Below the pieces are notes generated by a model that worked only from the letters and a program-made list of their open reading frames with translations, was not told the origin of the DNA and made no database searches. This document shows positions 32,966 to 33,263 of a stretch of DNA of 64,000 nucleotides, piece by piece. Source of the stretch: Octopus bimaculoides (Eukaryota). Location of the stretch: positions 43,386,632-43,450,631 of the forward strand of contig NC_068999.1 in assembly GCF_001194135.2 (NCBI RefSeq), read 5' to 3'. The translations under genes and the position numbers were made by a program. Within the stretch, counting starts at the first letter, position 1. Every line of letters starts with the position of its first letter.

Positions 32966-33152
32966 CTTTCTGGTATAAAATAATGGTTTTTTTTTTTAAT
33001 GCATGTTGGTTGAAACGTTTTTACCAATGGTGCTTTTCTTTTATTTTCATCACCCATCATGCCTTGCTGCTTGCTGTTGTCATGTGCTGCCATCCCTGCC
33101 ATGCTGCCATTTCATTGGCCAAACGCCATCATGTGCTCTGCATACTAATTAG
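32966..33152 (+). promoter_or_regulatory. AG-exclusion zone with dense YGCY (MBNL-binding) cluster upstream of the NLS exon
   Basis: No AG dinucleotide from 32966 to 33150. Twelve YGCY motifs counted in 33031-33137. TGCATG at 33000-33005 and TACTAAT at 33143-33149. Confidence 0.75.
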
Positions 33153-33221
33153 CCGCAAGTGGTTGAGGTCTTGACGGGCAAGAAGCGACCTCGTGAGCCT
33201 GCAGACGATCTCGTTACTCTG
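33153..33221 (+). CDS. mbl: Muscleblind 69-nt in-frame cassette exon with NLS-like motif (PQVVEVLTGKKRPREPADDLVTL)
   Basis: ttag acceptor at 33149-33152 and CTG|gtacta donor. 23 codons, phase 0-0, open. The KRPxE..DL motif matches the KRPLEATFDL peptide of the vertebrate MBNL1 54-nt NLS exon, at the same position (after ZnF4, before the KR/YQQAL exon). Confidence 0.85.
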
Positions 33222-33237
33222 GTACTATATCCCATCA

Positions 33238-33263
33238 TGCTTTGCATGTTGCTGTAGTCTGCT
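33238..33263 (+). promoter_or_regulatory. RBFOX (TGCATG) plus YGCY motifs just downstream of the NLS exon
   Basis: TGCATG at 33243-33248; TGCT at 33238, 33250 and 33260. Confidence 0.55.

Follow-up and report, generated by a model that had tools for sequence, protein, structure and literature searches.

The 64-kb window analysed here (64,000 nucleotides of Octopus bimaculoides contig NC_068999.1, forward-strand positions 43,386,632 to 43,450,631) is the octopus muscleblind (mbl/MBNL) gene. It contains a short optional exon that encodes the first of two KR motifs and lies inside a strongly conserved element at positions 32994-33316. This element is probably the octopus copy of an ancient muscleblind/MBNL splicing switch, which would act by negative feedback of the muscleblind protein (MBL) with tuning by RBFOX-type proteins.

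The KR cassette exon and its use

A scan for CCCH fingers identifies one MBNL-type zinc-finger 3/4 (ZnF3/4) exon in the window. Its translation is 100% identical to UniProt A0A0L8GW82 from Octopus bimaculoides, and the remaining relatives are likewise muscleblind proteins. A tblastn search with the multi-exon homologue P0003 places three consecutive exons on the window, namely the ZnF3/4 exon, the KR cassette and a second KR exon analogous to vertebrate exon 6 (Table 1). The ZnF3/4 exon is the one that precedes the cassette in isoforms containing ZnF3/4. The order agrees with that of vertebrates and is identical in human MBNL1, where the 54-nucleotide exon 5 comes after the ZnF3/4 exon. The exon-6 analogue reads GGLTGAPYAKRVAV…YQQALAMQLQQPYLPVT.

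The cassette is frame-preserving and 69 nucleotides long, the length given in the first-pass annotation of this DNA, and encodes the peptide PQVVEVLTGKKRPREPADDLVTL with the core passage GKKRPREPADDL. It has the form K(K)RP.[ED] with an acidic/DL tail, and its first KR motif is KKRPRE. The spacing K..KRP.E….DL fits human exon 5 (KSLKRPLEATFDL) and not human exon 6. The donor reads CTG|GTACTA, and the acceptor, ...CATACTAATTAG|CC, has no adjoining pyrimidine tract, a further feature that the annotation had pointed out.

Use of the exon was examined in Logan contigs of octopus RNA runs. A 124-nucleotide contig of run X27 joins an upstream exon (…CAGAAAGTTACGAGGGCTGACAGATTAGAG, QKVTRADRLE) to 33153…33221 and then to GGTGGTCTTACC… at 40622, at a depth of 189. 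A second contig of the same run joins the upstream exon straight to 40622, at a depth of 413. Only the skipped form is present in runs X25, X29 and X30 (depths 560, 47 and 75), and three further runs yield no exon-including contig, for a total of six runs besides X27 without one. Among the raw reads of run X24, two intronic reads but no exon or lariat reads were seen. The stretch 33153-33221 is a real and alternatively included exon. Skipping predominates in most octopus runs, which is consistent with repression by MBL and not diagnostic of it.

The upstream linker exon (…QKVTRADRLE) was not found within the window. The ZnF3/4 exon, too, is a cassette that preserves the frame. In the dominant RNA contigs the linker exon is joined straight to 40622 or to the KR cassette, at depths of 47-608, while contigs containing ZnF3/4 reach only ~9-12; from this scarcity, the major octopus isoforms in the sampled runs would have only one zinc-finger pair. 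In three runs the ZnF3/4 contigs run on past the donor into intron sequence (13507-13600), a sign of intron retention or of an alternative 3' end. At the other end of the gene, a small exon (…YSSTKLNEIQPYFT…) at ~42080-42121 comes after exon 6 in all RNA contigs. It is doubled in tandem in the predicted proteins P0072 and P0073, where the second copy may reflect either duplication of a micro-exon or an artefact of the gene model.

Protein homologues of the cassette are numerous. A word-indexed search with the cassette and exon 6 gave one match only, and an exhaustive HMMER search was required; with the cassette plus the next exon it returned 36 proteins. Many of these carry …GKKRPR[DE]P.[DE][DE]L… followed by …PY.KR.A…KSG.P.YQP…, and they include forms with arthropod-like N-termini. 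The homologous GKKRPR[DE]P.DDL segments in many invertebrate proteins indicate that the cassette exon is old. A 320-residue protein assembled from SRR8281664 and SRR8281693 transcripts shares with octopus the arrangement of linker, cassette and exon 6 and is 96% identical to it over the cassette and the next exon.

The cassette is also conserved as nucleotides. In transcript L001/L002 (L001:744-815), whose protein is 96% identical to that of octopus, the cassette shows 100% nucleotide identity and exon 6 only 84%. The sequence CCGCAAGTGGTTGAGGTCTTGAC is also identical in three other invertebrates. Synonymous sites within the cassette are frozen, a pattern that implies RNA-level constraint inside the exon.

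The AG-free zone and the YGCY cluster

The last AG upstream of the acceptor is at 32964-65. It leaves an AG-free zone of 185 nucleotides (32966-33150), the same length as claimed by the first-pass annotation. Only 6 of the 2941 AG-to-AG gaps on the forward strand of the window are at least this long, and most of the others are low-complexity or microsatellite-like. The zone ends in a weak UAG acceptor and holds a distal U-rich tract at -119 to -106 (negative positions are counted back from the first nucleotide of the cassette, positive ones forward from its last).

The zone also contains 12 YGCY motifs between 33031 and 33137, again as annotated (12 in ~107 nucleotides), which account for 12 of the 13 GC dinucleotides there. 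Dinucleotide shuffles of this stretch average 7.5 motifs, with 2 of 2000 reaching 12 (p ~0.001); mononucleotide shuffles average 2.6, and none of 2000 reaches 12. The window background is 0.91 YGCY per 107 nucleotides, and this is the only place on the forward strand that reaches 12. The opposite motif, RGCR, does not occur over -135..-1 (0 against 12 upstream YGCY), a clear sense-strand bias. The cluster lies between the candidate branch region and the acceptor.

Two other stretches of the window are YGCY-rich. One, on the minus strand at ~54300-54360, is the only other stretch with 12 YGCY; it is a (CCTG)n-type microsatellite, antisense to mbl. The other has 9 motifs in 13468-13585, immediately 3' of the ZnF3/4 exon, and is the sole other forward-strand cluster in the window with at least nine. 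A 273-nucleotide AG-free zone (13533-13805) is likewise found directly 3' of that exon. The other invertebrate loci do not conserve the sequence of this second cluster; they have 5-8 YGCY per equivalent 220 nucleotides.

A TGCATG motif stands on each side of the cassette, at 33000 and 33243, both in agreement with the earlier annotation. Judged by the frequency of the motif in the window itself, the joint chance of finding it at both places is ~0.005.

Conservation of the element and the candidate branch point

Comparison loci were found through open reading frames covering the ZnF3/4 exon on long genomic contigs of several invertebrate assemblies, from which ±10 kb was fetched. In five assemblies (L003, L004/5, L006/7, L008 and L010) the cassette lies 3-7.6 kb downstream of the ZnF3/4 exon, and the exon-6 analogue a further 1.2-2 kb downstream. 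At L009 and L011 the ZnF3/4 exon is present, with no cassette found within 10 kb of it. No encoding contigs were on record for P0077 or P0090, and the comparison set is without an arthropod locus. Two more copies came from JGI metagenome contigs scanned by pattern, a seventh from an invertebrate (L014) and one from a vertebrate (L015). Two further vertebrate regions were taken from Gekko kuhli MBNL3 (gecko, L013) and an MBNL gene of Coryphaenoides rupestris (grenadier, L012), and the 54-nucleotide exon 5 was located in each. The ten copies compared are therefore seven from invertebrates, octopus included, and those of gecko, grenadier and L015. In the grenadier contig, exons 5 and 6 (L012:17342-17959) are on the opposite strand to the ZnF3/4 exon, which is probably a local inversion or a misassembly in the draft genome.

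Approximately 160 nucleotides upstream and 95 nucleotides downstream of the cassette are conserved in six other invertebrate genomes. When the whole window is compared with the invertebrate genomic loci by blastn, the only non-repeat matches are the ZnF3/4 exon (72-80% identity), the element (76-87% over 250-310 nucleotides) and, weakly, exon 6. The 130 nucleotides upstream of the cassette are 79-88% identical to octopus and the 38 nucleotides downstream are 82-89% identical. The ZnF3/4 exon is 77-80% identical as protein, and only 57-63% at its synonymous third positions. Constraint on the non-coding flanks is thus stronger than on the silent sites of the ZnF3/4 exon, the best conserved coding exon of this gene.

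The multi-species alignment called for in the first-pass annotation shows which motifs are retained. Both TGCATG motifs are invariant in the six aligned invertebrates, and the downstream copy is present in 10 of 10 copies; conserved (U)GCAUG in the flanking introns is what is expected of an RBFOX-co-regulated exon. Of the 12 upstream YGCY motifs, nine keep the YGCY form in five or more of the six species, with TGCT, TGCC, CGCC and CGCT interchanging. The AG-free zone spans 128-185 nucleotides in all ten copies. In the eight copies for which motifs were counted there are 7-12 YGCY against 0-1 RGCR, with TGCATG at -135 to -196 and at +20 to +28. The 12-mer TGCTTTGCATGT is common to 10 of 10 copies, CCAUCAUG and CAUUGGCC are invariant, and TTGCACAGTCACATGAC is invariant in invertebrates.

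The annotation had named a lack of conservation of the YGCY cluster in other cephalopods as evidence that would count against it, and this objection is not borne out. Contigs of organisms D and E match 32987-33322 save for poly-T length in E, although these contigs were found by near-identity and offer no neutral yardstick. When DNA contigs from related species were compared at 80% likeness the result was noisy, and identity showed in D and E only. The transcript described above, with its completely identical cassette, points the same way. Upstream of the element, a 291-nucleotide assembly gap (32539-32829) and an (AC)n run (32830-32899) lie within ~100 nucleotides, so that any further upstream conservation in octopus is not visible in this assembly.

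The blocks shared by octopus and vertebrates are collinear and lie at near-equal distances from the splice sites. They are CTGCTTGCTGT, (CA)TTGGC, (G)CCATCATGTGCTC, CTAATTA(A)G| and TGCTTTGCATGT(AGC). Common to both are also a U-tract followed by TCACC[CT]AT, and a GTACT donor. Three blocks fall in the YGCY cluster: CTGCTTGCTGT(T) at 33067-33078; CATTGGCC at 33113-33120, present in octopus and grenadier and replaced by CTTGGCTC in gecko; and GCCATCATGTGCTC at 33125-33138, identical at 14 of 14 positions in octopus, grenadier and L015 and at 13 of 14 in gecko. The sequence TGCTTTGCATGTAGC is identical in five invertebrates and grenadier. The CTAATTA(A)G acceptor is found in gecko and L015, and grenadier has CTATTAAAAG. 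The upstream TGCATG of vertebrates is at -181 or -196.

Local alignment of the octopus upstream flank with those of gecko and grenadier gives scores of 43 and 39, respectively. Dinucleotide shuffles average ~21 (standard deviation ~3), and none of 500 reaches either score (z ~6.5-7). The outcome is similar for most other invertebrate-vertebrate pairs and for the downstream flanks. The test is blind to position and so understates the case for homology. Together, the collinear identical 8-14-mers and the shuffle results argue that the octopus and vertebrate architectures are homologous rather than convergent. The first-pass annotation had left the circuit as either ancient or convergent; ancient origin is favoured by these matches and by the near-identical flanks in six invertebrate genomes, and the splicing switch very likely dates to early bilaterian animals.

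The acceptor itself is unusual. A perfect ACUAAY consensus, the branch-site or STAR-protein type (SF1, QKI/HOW), lies only 4 nucleotides from the acceptor AG, which is too close to serve that AG. This UACUAAU may be a decoy branch site or a binding site for a QKI/HOW/SF1-type protein. The sequence UACUAAUUAG is found here in six of the seven invertebrate copies, with CUACUAAUAG in L008, and the vertebrate counterpart CUAAUUAAG is kept in gecko and L015.

For the branch point, the annotation had proposed UUAAU (A32999) followed by a U-rich tract. Both sequences are present, the tract at 33034-33047, but A32999 is probably not the best candidate. In L006 the AG-free zone begins at TGCATG, with no A-containing consensus before it, and in L008 there are AG dinucleotides (TTCAGAGAC) between TGCATG and the U-tract. 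A yUnAy sequence just upstream of the U-tract, at -122 to -137, is present in all six invertebrate loci examined. These AG limits and the conserved yUnAy favour A33023 over A32999. Gecko has UUCAU/UUUAU at -139/-134, and the placement of yUnAy near the U-tract agrees with the mapped vertebrate branch point at -141 (PMC7901844). The octopus branch is accordingly predicted to be near A33023.

Downstream of the exon, the TTGCACAGTCACATGAC block contains CACATGACAA at 33305-33314, an exact reverse complement to TTGTCATGTG at 33077-33086. Each of the two belongs to a block that is invariant among the invertebrates, and their pairing would loop out the exon. Exon-bracketing complementarity of 8-10 base pairs occurs in five of six invertebrates, is absent in L010 and in vertebrates, and is reached by 3-43 of 200 shuffles. 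It hints weakly at a helix that would loop the exon out. Folding of the entire region is no more stable than that of shuffles (z = -0.25), and RNAalifold finds almost no covariation (1 pair). The features are collected in Table 1.

Table 1. Features of the muscleblind window (positions are those of the whole 64-kb stretch).
Feature	Position	Strand	Description and evidence
mbl/MBNL zinc-finger 3/4 exon	13264..13506	+	243 nt, phase 0-0; CCCH scan, A0A0L8GW82 identity, RNA contigs
Distal GGCATG (GCAUG)	32951..32956	+	kept in 5/7 invertebrate copies; alignment A1, L014
Upstream TGCATG, RBFOX-type motif	33000..33005	+	invariant in six aligned invertebrates, present in L014
Best-supported candidate branch region, UUUAC, A33023 (-130)	33019..33027	+	directly upstream of U-tract; comparative
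Distal U-rich tract (33034-33047), then conserved block TCACCCAT	33034..33057	+	block is TCACCTAT in vertebrates; alignments
YGCY cluster, putative MBL-bound intronic splicing silencer	33058..33138	+	motif counts, shuffles, invertebrate and vertebrate comparison
Unusual 3' splice site UACUAAUUAG	33143..33152	+	CUGCUAAUUAAG in vertebrates; sequence comparison
KR cassette exon	33153..33221	+	69 nt, frame 0, phase 0-0; motif check, tblastn, RNA junctions, protein homologues
5' splice site GTACTA and conserved downstream block CCCATCATGCTTTGCATGTTGC	33222..33252	+	includes TGCATG at 33243; alignments
Invertebrate-invariant block TTGCACAGTCACATGAC(AA)	33296..33314	+	alignment
Next constitutive exon, exon-6 analogue	40622..40763	+	second KR motif (PYAKRVAV…YQQALAMQLQQ); tblastn, junction contigs

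Interpretation and comparison with known systems

The arrangement suggests the following mechanism. Inclusion of the 69-nucleotide exon would add the first KR motif, which with that of the exon-6 analogue would complete a bipartite nuclear localisation signal (NLS). The 3' splice site is weak, with its predicted branch point and its U-tract ~105-130 nucleotides upstream and the spacer packed with YGCY. When nuclear MBL is abundant it would bind the cluster at 33058-33138 and block the distal branch point, the U-tract or the UAG acceptor. The exon would then be skipped and the new protein would be less strictly nuclear, which amounts to negative feedback on nuclear MBL. The UGCAUG motifs on both sides would let RBFOX-type proteins tune the switch by tissue.

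Several points weigh against this interpretation. The conserved blocks hold much beyond YGCY and GCAUG (CCAUCAUG, CAUUGGCC, UACUAAU and GCACAGUCACAUGAC), so other factors must also read the element, and MBL need not dominate. The second KR motif of octopus is KRVAV and not KRPA. The dominant octopus isoforms in the sampled runs are without ZnF3/4, which bears on their RNA-binding and autoregulatory capacity. Contig depth is a crude measure of isoform use, and the invertebrate comparison loci from ENA and JGI have no finer taxonomic placement. Finally, MBL binding and repression, MBL-dependent skipping, nuclear targeting by the NLS, the RBFOX role and the exact branch position are carried over to octopus from homologues.

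A conserved splicing module run mainly by other proteins would explain part of the same data. These would be RBFOX (UGCAUG), STAR/QKI-HOW-SF1-type proteins (UACUAAU), PTB (the U/C-rich tract) and CELF (UGU-rich sequence), with little or no autoregulation by MBL. The two invariant UGCAUG motifs, the invariant UACUAAU at the acceptor and the large conserved blocks without YGCY all fit such a module, and in C. elegans the orthologous exon is repressed by FOX-1 as well (PMC10773944). We nevertheless consider it unlikely, since YGCY is kept through Y-to-Y substitutions with complete sense-strand bias, the homologous region of vertebrates has been demonstrated to be a silencer that responds to MBNL1 (PMC5082313, PMC7901844), and inclusion in the worm goes up when MBL-1 is lost (PMC10773944).

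It is very improbable that molluscs and vertebrates each built a YGCY-rich AG-free zone and resemble each other only through common motif needs. YGCY, GCAUG and splice signals are needed in both lineages and would force some similarity, the spacers between blocks differ, and exon length is 54 nucleotides in one group and 69-75 in the other. Against this, the ordered identical 8-14-mers include motif-free stretches (CCATCATG at 33126-33133, CATTGGCC and CTAATTA), the alignment scores exceed all dinucleotide shuffles, and the exon is orthologous by position and peptide.

A DNA-level intronic enhancer or promoter, with the exon adjacent by accident, is a remoter prospect still. Deep non-coding conservation is classically linked to enhancers (PMC3410860), and CATTGGCCAAT could be read as a double CCAAT/NF-Y-like palindrome; CATTGGCCAATG, which resembles two CCAAT boxes, is a perfect palindrome in L004 and L010, but the octopus form, CATTGGCCAAAC, is no palindrome. 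The conserved stretch has the exon at its centre and ends ~160 nucleotides upstream and ~95 nucleotides downstream of it, the splice-site-adjacent blocks belong to the element, and the strand asymmetry is strict, with AG exclusion and 7-12 YGCY against 0-1 RGCR in the eight copies counted. A chance CTG/CCTG-like low-complexity stretch before a fortuitous open frame is refuted by RNA junctions exactly at 33153 and 33221 and by conservation in ten genomes of an element that is not a tandem repeat, even though the window is microsatellite-rich and its minus-strand (CCTG)n also has 12 YGCY.

The preferred reading remains the MBL feedback switch. The first-pass interpretation was largely right on architecture and ancestry, and conservation at the nucleotide level is unexpectedly deep. 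On balance, and by a modest degree of confidence, we regard the intronic silencer of the MBNL NLS exon as an undescribed conserved non-coding element of bilaterian age, with the blocks CTGCTTGCTGT, (CA)TTGGC, (G)CCATCATGTGCTC, CUAAUUA(A)G and TGCTTTGCATGT kept since the protostome-deuterostome ancestor. If this is true, the silencer ranks among the oldest sequence-conserved cis-regulatory RNA elements known, and its blocks other than YGCY and GCAUG would mark sites or structures of further, equally ancient partners in the MBNL loop.

Loss of MBNL function is the driver of myotonic dystrophy, and the amount of nuclear MBNL is set by the exon-5 switch. If its control sequence has been kept from mollusc to vertebrate, evolution has performed a long natural mutagenesis experiment, and the blocks that survived it indicate which nucleotides are important. 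Many fall outside the YGCY motifs that earlier work has examined (CCAUCAUG, CAUUGGCC, the acceptor CUAAUUA and the extended UGCUUUGCAUGU). For cephalopod biology, a nuclear/cytoplasmic MBL isoform switch would operate in octopus beside abundant two-zinc-finger isoforms.

Among the closest known systems is exon 5 of MBNL1 and MBNL2 (and MBNL3), 54 nucleotides long with an upstream silencer (Gates 2011, as reported in PMC7901844; Wagner 2016, PMC5082313). In MBNL1 its branch point is at -141 and its 3' splice site is a weak AAG; in mouse and human a 90-nucleotide YGCY silencer between branch and acceptor is bound by MBNL1, and its deletion or mutation blunts MBNL1-dependent skipping. The region is a 212-nucleotide ultraconserved element, and inclusion of the exon supplies part of the NLS (PMC7901844, PMC5082313). 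The vertebrate-style layout proposed by the earlier annotation is borne out in octopus, with an optional KR(P) exon, weak 3' splice site, AG-free zone, distal U-tract, YGCY cluster and flanking GCAUG. The two systems share the gene family, the exon position (after ZnF3/4 and before the second KR exon), a frame-preserving cassette, the KRP.E…DL peptide and a weak [AU]AG acceptor preceded by CUAAUUA. Both have an AG-free zone of 154-185 nucleotides, a distal U-tract/branch region, a YGCY spacer, UGCAUG ~20-28 nucleotides downstream, and the blocks TCACCYAT, CTGCTTGCTGT, (CA)TTGGC, (G)CCATCATGTGCTC and TGCTTTGCATGT. They differ in exon length (69 nucleotides in octopus and 69-75 in other invertebrates, against 54), in the N-terminal half of the peptide, which is unrelated (PQVVEVLTG against TQSAVKSL), and in the acceptor (UAG in octopus, AAG in vertebrates). 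Invertebrates carry in addition the invariant downstream block TTGCACAGTCACATGAC and the full UACUAAU.

In C. elegans, mbl-1 exon 7 shows increased inclusion on loss of MBL-1, FOX-1 acts at an upstream GCAUG to repress it, and the long isoform is found in the nucleus (Verbeeren 2023, PMC10773944). As in octopus, the first-KR exon is optional and adjoins the second KR exon, and YGCY and an upstream GCAUG show conservation within the clade; repression by MBL-1 and FOX-1 has been shown in the worm. The worm exon differs in being 225 nucleotides long. KR motifs on adjacent exons, the first of them alternative, occur in nearly all bilaterian phyla (PMC10773944). The bilaterian ancestry of the autoregulatory NLS exon is already published there, and octopus adds to a known group. 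Conservation across phyla was described as almost limited to the peptide KR motifs, with nucleotide conservation only within Caenorhabditis or within mammals (PMC10773944); the intronic nucleotide identity between mollusc and vertebrate is not described in that work. A literature search, of incomplete coverage and amounting to absence of evidence only, found no paper on cephalopod or mollusc muscleblind splicing or on cross-phylum conservation of the intronic element.

The MBNL/PTB-repressed exons Tpm1 exon 3 (PMC3643581) and cTNT exon 5 likewise have UGC/YGCY clusters between a distant branch point/pyrimidine tract and the 3' splice site. Repression of these exons blocks early 3' splice-site recognition, and by analogy the octopus exon may be repressed in the same way. 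Both differ in belonging to other genes, in not being autoregulatory and in having no sequence homology to the element. The exon-spanning ultraconserved elements of SR-protein poison exons differ in being restricted to vertebrates and in acting through nonsense-mediated decay rather than localisation.

Bicores (bilaterian conserved regulatory elements; Clarke et al. 2012, PMC3410860) are a further parallel. They too are protostome-deuterostome non-coding conservation, a very rare class, found in a regulator gene and tied to the control of that regulator; they differ in being transcriptional enhancers. The Bicore screen removed 150 nucleotides on each side of every exon (PMC3410860), so an element like that of octopus could not have been found by it. 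Given this masking, exon-flanking splicing elements of bilaterian age may be an overlooked class.

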